From the sequence record PV472050.1: a stretch of 64,000 nucleotides of DNA; one strand, given 5' to 3'. A program made the translations under genes and the position numbers. Positions 25,571 through 37,872 of this stretch are shown here, in pieces (positions within the stretch are counted from its first letter, which is position 1; each line of letters opens with the position of its first letter). Below the pieces are notes generated by a model. It was not told the origin of the DNA. It made no database searches and saw only the letters and a list, made by a program, of their open reading frames with translations.

Positions 25571-26200
25571 ATGGCTTCAAACCTTCCAATCCAAACGATC
25601 TTCCTCGACAAATTCGTCGAGTTCAACAAAGACCGCTACAAAGACGACGCGGAAATGCTCGCTCTCTTTGACGGCCTGACCCTCGCGGACATCACGATCT
25701 CCGACATCACCGCCGACGGTACCAACCCCGAGCTGCAAAGCGCCACGGTCACCTCTGTGAGCCGCAACTTCAAAGGTGTCGAACAGAAATGGCTGCCGGC
25801 CAACATCAACACTCCGTTCGCCTTCGTGGTGGTGAACAAAGGTGCTCCTCTGACCGGCGAAGACCAACTGGCCGAGCAGACCACCCCGGGTGCCTACGTT
25901 TACCTGGTCGGTGAAGGCGAAGAAGCGGTTCAACGCGTGGGCCTGGTGCTGGCTTCCACCACCACCACTGAAACCCAAGCCGCCGACGCCCTGGCGCTGT
26001 TCAAGGCCAACTTCGAATACGTCCTGGACGACGCCGATGTCGATACTGCCACCGCCAAGGTGCTCAAGGTAACCACCAACCCGTTCACCCGCGGCGAGCT
26101 CGTGTACGAAATTGGTAAGGCTCCGATCATCGAGATTCCGGAAACTGACTACGGTCGTCTGGAATTCAAAGAAATCGTTCAACCCGAACCCCAACCGTAA
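25571..26200 (+). CDS. Probable virion protein, paralog of 37888-38481
   Basis: FLDKFVEFNKDRYKDD versus FLERFIAFNKERYSDE; very strong C-ending codon bias. Confidence 0.75.
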   Translation: MASNLPIQTIFLDKFVEFNKDRYKDDAEMLALFDGLTLADITISDITADGTNPELQSATVTSVSRNFKGVEQKWLPANINTPFAFVVVNKGAPLTGEDQLAEQTTPGAYVYLVGEGEEAVQRVGLVLASTTTTETQAADALALFKANFEYVLDDADVDTATAKVLKVTTNPFTRGELVYEIGKAPIIEIPETDYGRLEFKEIVQPEPQP

Positions 26201-29998: not shown

Positions 29999-30028
29999 CT
30001 AGGAGTAGCCCATAAGGGCTACTCCTAG
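29999..30028. terminator. Bidirectional hairpin between convergent blocks
   Basis: ctaggagtagccc-ataa-gggctactcctag, with T-rich sequence downstream. Confidence 0.75.
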
Positions 30029-30048: not shown

Positions 30049-30975
30049 TCAAAAGAAGCGGTAGATATCACGGTAGCGTCCTGCTTGGTAGTAATCTCCT
30101 GATCCAATGGTGGAGGAATTAACACCCCCTACCAGGTAAATCCCACTGTCATCCGTGAGCATCTCAAAGGCATACCGTTTAGTTACCGTGGTCATTTGCT
30201 TGTACCAACGGTCTTTCAGTATGTCGTAAATATGGAACACGATGTAACCGTTTTCAACACCACAGAGAATCAGGAACTGTTTCCACGAAGTCCCCCCAGT
30301 CCAACTACTGGCAATAGGTGCTTCTGTTACCGTTCTCCAGGTGTTGGTAACGGGATCGTATTCCCTGACCAGTCTTGACGTACCCGCGGGGTCGTTCCAT
30401 CCCCCGAATACATAGATCTTTCCATTGAACTGTCCGATGTAATGCCCATTGAGCGCCATCGGCATATCCGCTTTACGGGTCCAGACGTTGGTGGTGGTGT
30501 CATACTGGTGGTTGAGGGCTGTGGGTTTATTGGTACTCCCCATGTAACCCCCCATGCAGAAGATCGTCTTATCATCCAGGGTAATACACCGACCTTGTCC
30601 TCGGGCTCCATCCGGGAGGTTATTCAAGTTCGTTGAAGACCCTGTTGAAGGATTCAATTTCCACACATGACTCACATAGTTCCCATTATTACCGGTAATA
30701 CCCCAGAAGGAACTGTTGCAGTAACACCCGCCACTCCAGGCCCATACGGAGATATTCCCGGTAGTGGCCCACGTACGGGTGGTAAAGTCATAACGGGTAT
30801 ACGTCTGTTGTTGACCCCCACCGGCAAACTGACCTCCGAAGATATGAATCTTCCCTCCACCGATACCCGCACTGAAGTTAGCAATACCGTTGAAAGGAAC
30901 TTGAGTCACCCATTCCATTCGTCCCAGAATGTAGGGGTTATCATCAGAAAGGGTAAATAGTTGACTTTCTAACAT
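30049..30975 (-). CDS. Kelch-repeat beta-propeller protein
   Basis: Repeated IHIFGG, IFCMGG, IYVFGG and IYLVGG units with Y/W-D-x-x-T-x-x-W motifs. Confidence 0.85.
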   Translation of the reverse strand: MLESQLFTLSDDNPYILGRMEWVTQVPFNGIANFSAGIGGGKIHIFGGQFAGGGQQQTYTRYDFTTRTWATTGNISVWAWSGGCYCNSSFWGITGNNGNYVSHVWKLNPSTGSSTNLNNLPDGARGQGRCITLDDKTIFCMGGYMGSTNKPTALNHQYDTTTNVWTRKADMPMALNGHYIGQFNGKIYVFGGWNDPAGTSRLVREYDPVTNTWRTVTEAPIASSWTGGTSWKQFLILCGVENGYIVFHIYDILKDRWYKQMTTVTKRYAFEMLTDDSGIYLVGGVNSSTIGSGDYYQAGRYRDIYRFF

Positions 30976-31704: not shown

Positions 31705-33207
31705 TTACGTGATTTTAATCCGATACCCTTGGGAACCGCCAAAGAGGTAGAGGGCTTGGTTGTAGTTCACCCCCCACGCACTCGTAGCAACACCCGAGCC
31801 CAAACTTCCCAATAGCACCCACTTGTTCAACCGAGGTTCAAAATACTGAATCGGTTGATCATTAACACTCCCCGCAATCGCGTAGAGTTCTCCATTGTTC
31901 CCCAGTACAAAGGCTGCACCAACTGGGATACCAGGAAGAGTCACCGTTGTCCAGGTGTTCGTAGCCGGGTTATACTGGTACATCCCAGGGTTGTTCGCCC
32001 CCGCCACTACCCCACCAATAACACTCACCTTCCCTTGGTAAACCATTACCGTAAAGTCAGAACAATCTCCACTCTCAGCGAAGGCCTTAAGGACAGTGTG
32101 GGTATTGGCAACAGGATCGTACGCAATCAAGAAGCCTTTATTCGTGGTGGGTGTTCCTGACTGTACCCCGCAGATGTACACCTTCCCATTGAGATAAACC
32201 GCTCCACCTGTCAGCGGAGTCAGGGGCATATTAGGTAAACGGGTAACGATGTTCGTAGTGGGATTATACCCGTACGCATCATTCGCAGCGCCTCCTAGGA
32301 AGTAAAGAACATCCTTACCATCAGAAACCAGGATGGAGTTCTTCCGGGGGGGATTGGTAGGCCCTGTTGGACTCAGGGTTTCAAGTACCCGGGTTTCAAA
32401 GTTAACCCGACGGAACTCTTTGGTAGCGGTCTCTACCCCACCGTAGTAGTAAATATGGTTTCCATGGACACATCCCCGTCCGGTATTGAATAACAATGAA
32501 CCCGGCCAGTTATCCATCGCTTCACTCTGACCTTCAATAAACGGGTACGTCCCCTTGGCATACAGAATAGGTCGCCATCCCTGGGTAGGGACTTCAGAAT
32601 CACTGGCAGAGTACGTGACATTCCTAATGGTGTACCACCCTCGATACGCTTGAGTGGTACCGGGTTCATTACCCGTAATGTCTTTACCCCAGTTGGTATT
32701 CCCGTCAGTATTCCCACCACTGGCCGCTTGATTCATCCCCAGTTCTGCATCCGTGAACCGAGTGGGCCAGTTGAATCCATTGGGATCTGATACATGGACG
32801 TTATACAACAACCGGTCCCATTCAGACGTTGCCGTATTGCCATCACTCCCCATGGTCAAGAGACCCACGGTGTAAATAACCCCTCGGTACCGGAGCTCAT
32901 AGCTCCCTGTCCGTAGACCGGCTTGGGTCAACAGAATACGCCGAACATTATTCCGGATCGGCATTTGAGGAATGTAACAGGTTTCATTGTGGTTCGAAAA
33001 CTTCAACCACGGTTTGCCTTCATTGATCACTTTACCAAAGGCAATCCCAGTGAGTTTCGCTAAATCCTCGTAACCAAACAATTCCGTTGCAGGAGTGATC
33101 CCGTACCATCCTTGGGCAAGACTACCTGCTTTCAGTTTAGAAGGCCCCGGATAAGGATCGTCCGGAAAGGCATTCGCGGTCGATGTAAAGAGTAACGCTT
33201 CTATCAT
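31705..33207 (-). CDS. Virion-type protein (MIEALL N-terminal domain) fused to a Kelch propeller
   Basis: N-terminal PGPSKLKAGS...GWYG...WLKF domain; C-terminal YYYGG, LYFLGG, VSVIGG and LYLFGG Kelch blades. Confidence 0.75.
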   Translation of the reverse strand: MIEALLFTSTANAFPDDPYPGPSKLKAGSLAQGWYGITPATELFGYEDLAKLTGIAFGKVINEGKPWLKFSNHNETCYIPQMPIRNNVRRILLTQAGLRTGSYELRYRGVIYTVGLLTMGSDGNTATSEWDRLLYNVHVSDPNGFNWPTRFTDAELGMNQAASGGNTDGNTNWGKDITGNEPGTTQAYRGWYTIRNVTYSASDSEVPTQGWRPILYAKGTYPFIEGQSEAMDNWPGSLLFNTGRGCVHGNHIYYYGGVETATKEFRRVNFETRVLETLSPTGPTNPPRKNSILVSDGKDVLYFLGGAANDAYGYNPTTNIVTRLPNMPLTPLTGGAVYLNGKVYICGVQSGTPTTNKGFLIAYDPVANTHTVLKAFAESGDCSDFTVMVYQGKVSVIGGVVAGANNPGMYQYNPATNTWTTVTLPGIPVGAAFVLGNNGELYAIAGSVNDQPIQYFEPRLNKWVLLGSLGSGVATSAWGVNYNQALYLFGGSQGYRIKIT

Positions 33208-33271
33208 GATGACTTATACCCCAAAAAGAATACCAGGGAGACCCCGTAGAGCCCCCCTGGTAGTCATACTG

Positions 33272-36200
33272 TTAAGGAACAACAGCCCCCAACGCACCAA
33301 TCCATTTGGTTCCATTCCAGGTAAAGACGTAGACCAGTTCAGATCCACTGACGGATGGGGGAGTTCCGTTATGCCACACCAAGGGTGTTGCATCCTTACC
33401 AGCGAAGGTCACAACACCCGCTCCGCCGGTGACATTAACCGTCAGGACCATCCCACGTACCGGGGCTTTAGGTCCATCAGCAATCACCATTTGCTTACCC
33501 CCCGCCGCGGTGTTATTGATCTGGATGTACTGATCCACCAACGGATTGATTTCCCCACTGGTCGTAAAGACCTTAATCGGCAAATCATAGCGGTCAAAGG
33601 TGAGATCCAACTCCTTCCATTCAGGAATATCCGTACCGGCACGGAAGACCCGAACGTACTGTTTACCATCCTTGGCTTGGAGGTCTTCAATACCCTTCGG
33701 AAACTCAATAGCTTTCCATTCGGTACCGTCACCTTCTGCATTGACAGCCTGGGCGTAATACGACCCTGGAACCGCATTCGGTACGGGACCAATAGGGAGG
33801 GGTACCCAACGGTTACCCAACCGAACAACTCGGCCTTCAGACTCCATGGGGGAATTGACATCACCTGCCACCAAACGTCCCCACAGGACCCAACCCCGAT
33901 CAACGGTCTTGTAGAAGACGTTGAAGGTCTCAGAGACTGCCCAGTCACCGACTCGACCACTGAAGGCATCCGATGGTGCGTCTACACCCGGCGGCAACGT
34001 AAGCCACCGGCTGCCTTGCTCACCCTGAATACCGGGTTTCCCTTGAGGTCCGGGAGGGCCGTCACCCCCGGTCTTCCCGGTTTGACCGCGCCATTCACCG
34101 GTTTCACGCCAGGCGTTAGTCGACGTACTCCAGATGGCTAGGGTGTTGGACTCCGCCAGGTAATACGCATCCCCCGCAACCCCCGCAGGAATAGCCGCTT
34201 GTAAAGCTGCCAGGTTCGCATAATCCCCTTTAATGGGTACCGTAGGACCTTCGGGGCCTTGTTCACCCCGTTCCCCGTTCTTACCCGGTTCACCCCGGAA
34301 ATCAAACCCAGGACTCCACTCGCCCTCATCATTCACGAAATACGTTAAATGATTCTCCAGAACGAGGATGGCATCACCTTGCTTATAACCACCTGACGCA
34401 GGCAGTTCCGCCAAGGTGGGTACCACGTCCACCATGTTCAACCCAGCACCGGGAGCGCCATCACTCCCTGGCATGGACACCGGACCCACGTTATCCCAAC
34501 GAGTTCCGGTATTCACCCAGAGGTCTTTATTTAGGTCAACGTAGGCTTTACCTTGAGTTTCCTCGTTAATCGGAGGAGGATCTGCATCCGCAGGTGTCAG
34601 GACTTTAATGATGTCCAAGGACTTACCATTCAGGCCATCCTTACCGTCCTCACCATCCTTCCCTTTAAAGACACCCAGATTCGCCCATGCATTCGAAATG
34701 AATCCATAGATCGCGTTTTCATCACGAACAGCATAGACCCATTGATCTTCAGGATTCGCAGGAAGATCCGCTACTGTGTCAACCACACCCCGAAGAACAA
34801 TGTTGGTGCCGTCACGACCATGGAGGCTGGCTAGGAACTCCTCTTCACTCCCAGTATTCCCTTTGGAAATCCAGAGTTCATACGTGGACTGACCATCGAT
34901 ACCGTCTTTCCCTTTAAAGGGACCCAGGTCCAACCAGGTCGAACTCGCTGCACTCCATACGTACAACCGAAGGGTGTCTCGTGTCACATACCCATCTTGG
35001 TTAGCCGGAGGGTTGGGTAGGTTGTCCAGATCAGCACGGGTCCCTACAGTCCCCAAGACATTCAAGTTCTCACCGGGTTCGCCTTTCATGGCCGCCCAGT
35101 AATCATCTTCCGTCTTACCTTGGTTCTCGGGTTTATTCAACCAGACCTGAACACTATTCAGACCACCCGGTCCTACATCACCCTTATCCCCTTTAAACCC
35201 CCCCAGCTTCCGCCATGCGCTGTTCAGGTAGATGTACAGGGTATTCTCATCCTGAACCGAATAAACATCCTGTTCTACACCGGGGTTGGGGAGGTCATCT
35301 ATGGTCGCTACGGTGTCTTTAACGATCAAATTACGACCGTCAACACCGTTTCTACCATCTTCTCCCTTGAATTTACCCAGAATTACCCAGTTATTCTCAA
35401 TCCACATACGGACTGTATTGTCCGCGCGAACCGACCAGGCATCCTGTTCAGCCGCGTTACTCGGGAGTTCACTGGCCAGGTCTACCGCCCCTTTCACCAC
35501 GATACTCTTACCGTCGGTACCGTCCTTACCGTCCTTGCCCTTATACTGACCGACATCAACCCAATCCGTACGGTCTGCAATGTAGATCCACAGGTGGCCC
35601 GTATCCAACGTCACCCAGCCATGTTGATCAACCGGGTCTTTAGCATTCAGCGCATTACGGTCAGCCACAGTTCCCTGTACCTGAAGGTTAGCCCCGCGTT
35701 CACCCCGAATGGCTTCCTGCCACTGTGTAATGGTTTTGTTCTCGTTACCGGGAATCTTCTTCCAGGTTTCGAACGCATCATCTCCCTGAGGGCCTTTATC
35801 GCCCCGTTGGGAATCCAGGAACTCCTGAAGAGTCTTTTCTTCATTCCCAGGAATCTCTTTCCACAGCTCGAAGGTACTCTTGCCGTCAGGACCTCGAATA
35901 TTCAAACTTTCCCAGACAAACTCACCCGCTGTTTTACCCGGAACCAGGACATGGATATCATTCCGCCACAGGTAGGCATCCCCGGGTTTATTTCCTTCAG
36001 GCAGAGGGAGATCGAGGTTGTCGGGCCAAACACCCAACAGGTTAATCCCCCGTTCCCCTTGCAAGGAACCCGAAGACGCCCATTCGGTGCCGTTCCATAC
36101 CCTTAGGGCAAAGTTAACGAAGTAGGCCGTACCGATCGGAAGCCCTTGGGTATCAATAGCCTCCAGTTCAGCTTCCGAATTGAGCTTACCTTTAAGAACA

Positions 36201-36412
36201 ACCCCTTGAGTTGAGAGGGATTCTAGACTCTCCTTCAGCCACCGGGTACGCGCATCCAGCACACGCGCTTGGAAGTTAGCCGCGCCCTCGCCATTGTCTC
36301 CCCCACGAACCCGTACGTCAGTCACCAGAGCCGGAAGGTGTTCTTCCCATCGAGACTCCTCGACGATTGCTGGTAATTCACCCGGCGTTACTGTTTCATC
36401 ACCAATAGCCAT
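33272..36412 (-). CDS. Collagen-like tail fibre, 1046 aa
   Basis: N-terminal anchor W...ANFQARVLDARTRWLK, many short Gly-X-Y stretches alternating with ~40-aa globular repeats, and a C-terminal beta domain. Confidence 0.85.
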   Translation of the reverse strand: MAIGDETVTPGELPAIVEESRWEEHLPALVTDVRVRGGDNGEGAANFQARVLDARTRWLKESLESLSTQGVVLKGKLNSEAELEAIDTQGLPIGTAYFVNFALRVWNGTEWASSGSLQGERGINLLGVWPDNLDLPLPEGNKPGDAYLWRNDIHVLVPGKTAGEFVWESLNIRGPDGKSTFELWKEIPGNEEKTLQEFLDSQRGDKGPQGDDAFETWKKIPGNENKTITQWQEAIRGERGANLQVQGTVADRNALNAKDPVDQHGWVTLDTGHLWIYIADRTDWVDVGQYKGKDGKDGTDGKSIVVKGAVDLASELPSNAAEQDAWSVRADNTVRMWIENNWVILGKFKGEDGRNGVDGRNLIVKDTVATIDDLPNPGVEQDVYSVQDENTLYIYLNSAWRKLGGFKGDKGDVGPGGLNSVQVWLNKPENQGKTEDDYWAAMKGEPGENLNVLGTVGTRADLDNLPNPPANQDGYVTRDTLRLYVWSAASSTWLDLGPFKGKDGIDGQSTYELWISKGNTGSEEEFLASLHGRDGTNIVLRGVVDTVADLPANPEDQWVYAVRDENAIYGFISNAWANLGVFKGKDGEDGKDGLNGKSLDIIKVLTPADADPPPINEETQGKAYVDLNKDLWVNTGTRWDNVGPVSMPGSDGAPGAGLNMVDVVPTLAELPASGGYKQGDAILVLENHLTYFVNDEGEWSPGFDFRGEPGKNGERGEQGPEGPTVPIKGDYANLAALQAAIPAGVAGDAYYLAESNTLAIWSTSTNAWRETGEWRGQTGKTGGDGPPGPQGKPGIQGEQGSRWLTLPPGVDAPSDAFSGRVGDWAVSETFNVFYKTVDRGWVLWGRLVAGDVNSPMESEGRVVRLGNRWVPLPIGPVPNAVPGSYYAQAVNAEGDGTEWKAIEFPKGIEDLQAKDGKQYVRVFRAGTDIPEWKELDLTFDRYDLPIKVFTTSGEINPLVDQYIQINNTAAGGKQMVIADGPKAPVRGMVLTVNVTGGAGVVTFAGKDATPLVWHNGTPPSVSGSELVYVFTWNGTKWIGALGAVVP

Positions 36413-36429: not shown

Positions 36430-37872
36430 TTAAGGGGTAAAAACAAGATGGGTATTCAATTGACCCACCCGCACCGTGGTCGTTTGAGCGACCCCTTTCT
36501 TCAACACAATCACGACCCGGAGTTTCAAGGTCTTAGGCGCGCCGGCCAATTCAAGAATTTGGGTATCGAAGATCCCCGAGAGATCCCCTTGACGAAGAGG
36601 GTGGTTCAGTTCAGTGTTCTGACCCGAGCGCACAGTTTGGACTTGATCGTTCTGGTAGGTTACTTCCAGTTCCAACCCTACTTGCAAGACTGCTTCCGCA
36701 TCGGTTTGAATCGCCCAACGACCCTGAGCTACCAGTTTCATCCCTACGGTCAGGTTTGTAATAGGGAGATCCTGTTCCATTCCCAAGGTCGGTTGATTAC
36801 CGGTAGGCGTGCCCGTAAAGGACATCACCTGGTATTCACCCCCTGAAGGGTTGGCTTCCTTGGTAATAGCGACGGTCAAACCGGTCAGTTGATTACCCCC
36901 AATACCGGTATTCGAGGCGATCTCAACCGTGGTAATGGTAGCACCTCCCGAATTTCCAGCACTACCATCATTACCAGTCAGCAAAGGGTTAGGGTTAATG
37001 CTCCCGAAGAAGTGAGCGGTCTCCGGCGGTGTCGTGCTGAACGGAATGTAACTGGTCGGTAAGGTAATGGTATTCTTGAACAGCTTGCTCACCGCAGCGG
37101 CAACATGGTTACCGATGATCTCGGCTCCTTTGGGACTTGGGTGTACACCGTCCCCCAGCATGCCTGCCAGCGGCTTATTGACATTACCCGGCTCTACCAT
37201 GTCATCCCAGGGGTTAACCACCACAATGCCCCGTTTAGGCAGCTCAGAGAGCATCCACTGGTGCACTTGGTAATGAATAGCCAATTGTTCATCACTGAGC
37301 CCAATAGCGGCTTGTTCTACCGGGGTTTCAGCGATCACAATGACCGTCTTACCATTGCCCAGCAATGTGGCGTAAATCTCGGAGAGGTTATTAATCGTTT
37401 CATTGAACGTCTGGTTGTGCAGACGGTCGTTCCCCGAACCCAAATGGATAATGACATCGAACTTATCCAGGGAAGCCAGGAGTTGAGGAAGACGTTGGGC
37501 TTGTTGGGAGGTAGTATTCCCATCGACACCGGCGTTCATGGCATCCGGGAAGGCTACGACCCCCTCGGTCTTCGCACTGGTCCAGAAGGCCAGACCAACG
37601 TTACCTTTCACACACTGGTAAGCCCTGCTGTCACCGTACACCACGATATTGCGGTTAAACGGCAACCGGTCATTACTTACCGCATTGACTTTGGTGGTCA
37701 GGGTATTCACTTCTTCTTTCAAATAACGGGTACGAGCGTCCAGCACGCGCGCTTGCTTGTTCGCATTGCCGGTGCCTTCTTCGGTGGCTTCAACCTTGTC
37801 ATCCGGCATCAGAGCCAGCAAAGGTTCAACCCATCCCGGTTGTTCATTAATCACTACGGGATTGTCAGCCAT
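36430..37872 (-). CDS. Tail fibre/spike with an SGNH (GDSL) esterase domain
   Basis: Same anchor as above (ANKQARVLDARTRYLK); blocks VYGDS, NAGVDG, GSGND and DGVHP; C-terminal beta-sandwich-like region. Confidence 0.88.
   Translation of the reverse strand: MADNPVVINEQPGWVEPLLALMPDDKVEATEEGTGNANKQARVLDARTRYLKEEVNTLTTKVNAVSNDRLPFNRNIVVYGDSRAYQCVKGNVGLAFWTSAKTEGVVAFPDAMNAGVDGNTTSQQAQRLPQLLASLDKFDVIIHLGSGNDRLHNQTFNETINNLSEIYATLLGNGKTVIVIAETPVEQAAIGLSDEQLAIHYQVHQWMLSELPKRGIVVVNPWDDMVEPGNVNKPLAGMLGDGVHPSPKGAEIIGNHVAAAVSKLFKNTITLPTSYIPFSTTPPETAHFFGSINPNPLLTGNDGSAGNSGGATITTVEIASNTGIGGNQLTGLTVAITKEANPSGGEYQVMSFTGTPTGNQPTLGMEQDLPITNLTVGMKLVAQGRWAIQTDAEAVLQVGLELEVTYQNDQVQTVRSGQNTELNHPLRQGDLSGIFDTQILELAGAPKTLKLRVVIVLKKGVAQTTTVRVGQLNTHLVFTP

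Follow-up and report, generated by a model that had tools for sequence, protein, structure and literature searches.

A predicted SGNH esterase with a tail-fibre anchor in EL-type jumbo phages of Pseudomonas aeruginosa

The 64,000-nucleotide (nt) stretch of the Pseudomonas phage MIZ-Pa99 record PV472050.1 analysed here (the window) carries a homologue of the phage EL gene ORF157, whose product is gp157. This protein of 480 amino acids (aa) combines an N-terminal region shared with the adjacent tail fibre, an SGNH/GDSL hydrolase domain with a full set of predicted catalytic residues, and a C-terminal beta-sandwich resembling a carbohydrate-binding module (CBM). On balance, we predict that it is a virion-attached esterase, probably trimeric and docked through its anchor, that cleaves short O-acyl groups (most likely acetyl) from a glycan of the bacterial surface bound by the sandwich. 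Because proteins of this kind are established and the gene has long been labelled as a lipase or tail fibre, gp157 is an addition to a known kind.

The gene is an uninterrupted frame of 1443 nt from ATG to TAA, with the sequence AGGA positioned 9 nt ahead of the start codon. It is identical (100%) to positions 160430-161872 of the MIZ-Pa99 record and shares 96.3% nt and 96.9% aa identity with its EL counterpart; nt identity is 95-96% to EL and seven further EL-like P. aeruginosa jumbo phage records. Relative to EL, the ratio of nonsynonymous to synonymous changes per site (pN/pS) is 0.13 for the whole protein, with 15 amino-acid changes distributed across the SGNH and C-terminal domains. The gene is under purifying selection. 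The MIZ-Pa99 record is filed under Pantevenvirales; Straboviridae, yet the genome is 96% identical to that of EL (genus Elvirus), and the family label looks like a taxonomy error in the deposit.

The hydrolase domain was recognised by the Pfam profile PF13472 (Lipase_GDSL_2; E 1.6e-13, 52 bits against a cut-off of 32.9, residues 79-251), and PF00657 also scored above its cut-off (E 2.9e-7). TesA-type lysophospholipases are among the sequence matches. Block I (G80-D81-S82) provides the predicted nucleophile, block II has Gly115 in addition to the predicted oxyanion-hole residue Gly118, and block V reads D241-G-V-H244. Block III is S146-G147-N148-D149, within the literal string GSGND, so that the first Gly of the textbook GxND is replaced by Ser (Thr in relatives); this substitution is minor and the sole departure from the textbook blocks. 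Ser82, Gly118, Asn148, Asp241 and His244 are invariant in an alignment of 16 sequences, down to 30% identity, and so are Gly80, Asp81 and Asp149. The catalytic set, the profile scores, this conservation and the low pN/pS therefore make the observation real and far above chance. The blocks, the profile score and the alpha/beta/alpha fold place the protein in the SGNH/GDSL superfamily.

We built an AlphaFold2 model on the 16-sequence alignment (mean predicted local distance difference test score (pLDDT) 69, predicted template modelling score 0.63). It comprises a weakly predicted N-terminus with a long helix (residues 36-66), an alpha/beta domain (72-266), a linker (267-290) and an all-beta domain (291-477). 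When residues 72-266 of this predicted model were compared with solved structures using VIA-align, the best match to a compact SGNH fold had Z 19.4 and a root-mean-square deviation (rmsd) of 2.4 over 186 residues. The neighbours with Z 17-19.4 include a polyvinyl-alcohol (acetate) esterase (9kqz/9kr1), PbeAcXE (7tog), CE3 enzymes (5b5s/2vpt), Est24 (5hoe) and sialate O-acetylesterases (7pzg/6xpm). The structural neighbours of the modelled domain are mostly polymer or carbohydrate acetyl-esterases. A specific link to enzymes of the AlgX/AlgJ/Ape type was considered and rejected: the peptidoglycan O-acetylesterase 4k3u reached only Z 13.8, and AlgX and AlgJ were not among the matches listed.

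The C-terminal domain is modelled with a pLDDT of mostly 70-93. It superimposes on a hyaluronan-binding CBM (4d0q; VIA-align Z 14.5, rmsd 2.8, 156/161 residues), and Foldseek matched it to the CBM sandwiches 2c26 and 2zey with probability 1.0. It also resembles the C-terminal domains of the tailspikes K2-2 TSP and CBA120 TSP4 (8iq9, 5w6h). A Pfam search placed no profile, CBM profiles included, on this domain. The modelled domain matches solved CBM folds, and sugar binding is predicted. Look-alikes of the whole protein in BFVD include phage proteins named 'tail fiber', 'tail spike' and 'esterase'.

Over residues 7-61 the protein aligns with residues 15-69 of its neighbour, the tail fibre homologous to gp156, at 51% identity (E 1e-11), and a search of the whole EL genome found this N-terminus in these two genes only. 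Residues 1-70 contain none of the changes relative to EL. The predicted helix has a heptad pattern (Leu44, Leu51, Leu58 and Val65 at d; Thr48, Val55 and Val62 at a), which suggests that residues 36-66 likely form a short coiled coil. The anchor also resembles the start of a Klebsiella P2-like prophage protein (45% identity, E 6e-4) that is encoded directly after 'tail protein I', the tail-fibre slot, and has weak PHROG matches to the N-termini of several long phage proteins. A first-pass annotation of the sequence had placed the complete catalytic set (GDS, G, GxND, DxxH) between a fibre anchor and a sandwich-like C-terminal domain. This architecture was recovered here, with the anchor traced to the neighbouring fibre, Ser146 in place of the first Gly of GxND, and the sandwich matched to a CBM-type fold.

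The closest support from a virion comes from phage phiPsa374. Its gp053, annotated as 'SGNH-hydrolase (Tail Fibre protein)', was detected in purified virions by liquid chromatography-tandem mass spectrometry (42 unique peptides, 94% coverage) and was about as abundant as the neighbouring fibre gp055 (PMC9796965). It is 33% identical over residues 71-472, includes both the SGNH domain and the sandwich, and its gene adjoins a fibre-like gene. The two differ in that gp053 has a short N-terminus without the EL-type anchor and belongs to a 98-kb myovirus of P. syringae. Virion attachment of gp157 is a good inference because the anchor is shared only with the neighbouring fibre, is unchanged relative to EL and resembles a P2-like protein in a fibre slot, and because gp053 is present in virions. 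The receptor of phiPsa374 is lipopolysaccharide (LPS) (PMC9796965). The P. putida G3 jumbo phages, which also carry the SGNH and sandwich module, were not among the phages infecting an O-antigen-less wbpL mutant (bioRxiv 10.1101/2024.03.26.586772). We count both results in favour of the virion-attached esterase.

The SGNH and sandwich module forms a family of its own, PHROG 6102 ('lipase'), whose profile is matched over essentially its full length (E 1.1e-138; residues 43-480 against profile positions 8-442 of 442). Using tblastn (E<=1e-5), we identified the module in 67 phage records, all but two of them (65/67) from Pseudomonas phages, with a single Pectobacterium phage record among the matches. 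Four Pseudomonas species (P. aeruginosa, P. syringae, P. putida and P. fluorescens) have phages with a member of this family. The N-termini differ. The EL type has the 70-aa anchor, whereas podovirus-like P. aeruginosa prophages and viral contigs have about 190 aa (with the gene inside the tail module, after a tail-tip gene), P. putida jumbo phages have about 385 aa (adjoining a 'minor tail protein'), and phiPsa374-like myoviruses have a short N-terminus (adjoining a fibre-like gene). Receptor-binding proteins typically keep the distal module and exchange their N-termini. The occurrence of the module on varied N-termini near tail genes in other Pseudomonas phages also speaks for the esterase proposed here.

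In the mechanism we propose, residues 1-70 (an extended peptide and the short coiled coil) would dock gp157 on the tail or baseplate in the manner of the long fibre gp156 next to it. The CBM-like sandwich would hold a Pseudomonas surface glycan for the SGNH domain, whose Ser82-His244-Asp241 triad, with Gly118 and Asn148 forming the oxyanion hole, would hydrolyse short O-acyl esters, most likely O-acetyl. By analogy with esterase tailspikes, deacetylation at adsorption may let the virion pass through, or bind deeper in, the LPS or exopolysaccharide layer. The main binding would be provided by gp156, with gp157 acting alongside.

An established tailspike esterase of this kind is coliphage G7C gp63.1, which, as cited in PMC12625404 (Prokhorov et al. 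2017), is a virion-attached receptor-binding protein with an SGNH esterase and sugar-binding modules that deacetylates O-antigen at adsorption. The first-pass annotation had invoked it as a parallel, and it stands as an analogue in working principle but not as a relative in sequence (hhalign probability 0.3%, and gp63.1 absent from the Protein Data Bank sequence hits at E<=10). Nor is gp63.1 among the 50 structural matches listed. It has 851 aa and another domain order and docks on gp66, whereas the EL protein has 480 aa and a P2-like fibre-type N-terminus. The two proteins are of the same kind and of different lineage. Litunavirus and Luzseptimavirus fibres of P. aeruginosa phages likewise combine an SGNH-type domain with a CBM; these regions were proposed, without an assay, to be O-antigen deacetylases, for Litunavirus by analogy with gp63.1 (PMC12625404). 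Their domain is G7C-like and internal to a fibre of about 1080 aa, whereas the esterase of EL is short and encoded on its own next to the fibre, and neither genus is among the tblastn matches of the module at the threshold used.

The only relative by fold with biochemistry is the nickie-type GDSL enzyme of a Pseudomonas siphophage. Its 'part24' domain hydrolysed 4-methylumbelliferyl (4-MU) esters from C2 to C10, an activity abolished by mutation of the active site, and helped an endolysin to act from outside the cell, for which the active site was needed (PMC12173070). The BFVD model A0A2H4P717 matches both gp157 domains (E 1.7e-25, TM 0.67 on the query) and likewise contains an SGNH domain and a predicted CBM. 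The enzyme differs in sequence (about 18% identity) and in context, the gene lying beside those for holin and endolysin, and its authors deem it lysis-associated (PMC12173070). The cellular carbohydrate esterases PbeAcXE (7tog), CE3 (2vpt/5b5s) and the CEX acetyl-mannan esterase (6hh9/6hfz) share the compact SGNH fold (Z 13.6-18.5), and CEX and PbeAcXE also have a CBM-type sandwich appended to it. These two-domain enzymes lack a virion anchor, and their domain orientation differs (rmsd of about 18 Å with both domains aligned). Deacetylation of surface polysaccharide is reported as experimentally shown for Pectobacterium phage Possum (PMC9569702) and Acinetobacter phage Aristophanes (PMC8471582); the proteins responsible are likewise virion-associated SGNH-type receptor-binding proteins, from other hosts and lineages.

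Existing labels of the gene are divided. The EL gene (ORF157, PPEV_gp157) is annotated as 'putative GDSL lipase family protein' (AJ697969) and 'lipase' (RefSeq), and the orthologue is labelled 'tail fiber' in three EL-like records. The lipase reading has been on record since 2005, and the idea of an esterase is not new for this gene. A search of the literature library used here returned nothing specific on EL gp157/ORF157 or an Elvirus lipase or SGNH protein. A review mentions 'one Pseudomonas phage' with a predicted virion lipase, and the phage is not named there.

The 'lipase' label, the TesA-type matches and the nickie-type look-alike, with its activity on C2 to C10 esters and its aid to an endolysin from outside (PMC12173070), would all agree with a true lipase or acyl-esterase carried by the virion, acting on an outer-membrane lipid (phospholipid, ester-linked acyl chains of lipid A, or lipoprotein) and loosening the membrane at the site of penetration. 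We consider this unlikely, given that most of the top fold matches are acetyl or carbohydrate esterases, that the appended domain resembles a carbohydrate-binding rather than a membrane-binding module, and that an enzyme at a fibre tip would reach the glycan layer ahead of the lipid. A lipase of a lysis cassette (mycobacteriophage LysB or nickie type) was rejected for EL, as there is no neighbouring holin, endolysin or spanin gene. Equally unlikely, in our judgement, is a late soluble enzyme, freed at lysis, that deacetylates exopolysaccharide or the receptors on debris so that progeny spread through the biofilm untrapped. The fibre anchor is present and fully conserved in the EL-type protein, the gene lies between virion-type genes and away from lysis genes, and the phiPsa374 homologue is abundant in purified virions; in favour of such an enzyme are two family members away from the tail genes, described below, and the position of the nickie-type gene. 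That the SGNH fold only binds the receptor, as a lectin would, and turns over barely or not at all, we regard as very improbable. Some phage receptor-binding proteins retain inactive enzyme folds and the activity of the family rests on prediction, but the five catalytic positions are invariant at 30-50% identity amid diverged surroundings, and the low pN/pS also argues against such a role.

Several points weigh against the virion-attached esterase itself. The podovirus-like P. aeruginosa prophages (L004-L007; IMG/VR contig L010/L021) have two copies of the module, of which a 602-aa one lies in the tail module. The second, of 436 aa and 51% identical, is anchor-less and lies at the prophage end by host genes; it could be a soluble or lysogen-expressed receptor-editing enzyme. 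In the phiKMV-like Krylovirinae phage MR6 (L037:5875-7290), a 471-aa copy with 30% identity lies past the lysin and Rz genes at the right end of the genome. These two copies show that the module also occurs away from tail genes. The presence of gp157 in EL-type virions is argued from indirect evidence, and esterase activity is predicted from sequence for every member of PHROG 6102. The AlphaFold2 model is only moderate, and is weak near the nucleophile loop (residues 84-91 and 109-116). The O5 O-antigen of PAO1, the usual host of EL, probably carries little or no O-acetyl, in which case gp157 may act on a different target.

O-antigen and alginate are guesses as substrates of gp157. In P. aeruginosa, acetyl groups are found on alginate and on the O-antigens of numerous serotypes, and the outer core is O-acetylated non-stoichiometrically. 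The presumed low O-acetylation of the PAO1 O-antigen, together with the spread of the family over four Pseudomonas species, makes a conserved target (core or alginate) worth considering beside O-antigen. A more speculative proposal, to which we give little credence, is that PHROG 6102 is a receptor-editing enzyme used across the genus Pseudomonas on a shared O-acetylated glycan (for example alginate or the LPS outer core) rather than on a serotype-specific O-antigen, and that gp157 would occupy a gp156-type docking site in EL, giving mixed 'binder' and 'editor' fibres. If true, the module would be the first phage alginate or core deacetylase.

Coordinates of gp157, its domains and predicted catalytic residues, and neighbouring features in the window
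Feature	Position	Strand	Basis
Whole gene, homologue of phage EL ORF157/gp157	36430..37872	-	480 aa + stop; sequence comparison
N-terminal anchor, residues 1-70	37663..37872	-	Homology to adjacent fibre N-terminus; predicted helix
SGNH/GDSL hydrolase domain, residues 72-266	37075..37659	-	Pfam PF13472 and structural alignment
Ser82 codon, predicted nucleophile, block I GDS	37627..37629	-	Alignment and codon check
Gly118 codon, block II, predicted oxyanion hole	37519..37521	-	Alignment and codon check
Asn148 codon, block III S-G-N-D	37429..37431	-	Alignment and codon check
Asp241..His244, block V DxxH	37141..37152	-	Alignment and codon check
Disordered low-confidence linker, residues 267-290	37003..37074	-	pLDDT below 50
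C-terminal CBM-like beta-sandwich, residues 291-477	36442..37002	-	Model and structural matches
Downstream tail fibre gene, EL gp156 homologue, 1046 aa, same anchor	33272..36412	-	PHROG 3904 'tail fiber protein', E 1e-212
Upstream gene, EL gp158 homologue, 197 aa	37888..38481	-	15-nt gap; matches N-terminal part of 'virion structural protein' PHROG
Terminator-like hairpin, 14 pairs, then T-run	33231..33262	-	Directly after fibre gene; consensus scan only

The minus strand carries the genes for the gp158, gp157 and gp156 homologues head to tail, with gaps of 15-17 nt (15 nt between gp158 and gp157), and the hairpin after the fibre gene would close this transcription unit. A second GC-rich hairpin (13 pairs) is located at the end of a gene run, at 29999..30028 (+), and both hairpins are likely transcription terminators of the cluster. 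The genes around the cluster encode Kelch-repeat 'virion structural' proteins, including flanking beta-propeller proteins at 30049..30975 (-) and 31705..33207 (-) (Pfam Kelch_1, E 3e-22). The beta-propeller protein gp131 is located at the baseplate periphery of phiKZ, and the flanking Kelch proteins may be its EL counterparts. We identified no lysis gene within 9 kb on either side of the gp157 homologue, its neighbours being the fibre, the Kelch virion proteins and gp158.

The gp158 homologue is a candidate docking partner of the anchor. Its match in PHROG 21620 ('virion structural protein') covers positions 1-191, and that of the Kelch gp155 homologue (31705..33207 (-)) covers positions 192-390; from these matches, it looks as if one ancestral virion protein was split around an inserted pair of esterase and fibre genes. 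Both RefSeq and EMBL annotate 330 nt of gp158 in EL, although the actual frame is 594 nt here and in EL. The gp158 homologue has a paralogue (26% identity, E 2e-8), encoded at 25571..26200 (+), and the Erwinia jumbo phages Joad and RisingSun each have four places that match the gp158 homologue. The two fibres that share the anchor may each have a docking protein of their own.

EL-type jumbo phages are being ranked as candidates for P. aeruginosa therapy (PMC12141865), and their receptor-binding apparatus is an unstudied part of these candidates. If gp157 edits acetylated LPS or alginate as an esterase of the virion, it would help to explain host range and how these phages act on mucoid or biofilm cells. 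Without its anchor it would further be a compact enzyme of about 400 aa, of possible use against biofilms or in fusions with endolysins; one such fusion already contains a similar GDSL domain from a Pseudomonas phage (PMC12173070). A function for PHROG 6102, a module specific to Pseudomonas phages, would annotate about 70 phage genomes and many prophages.

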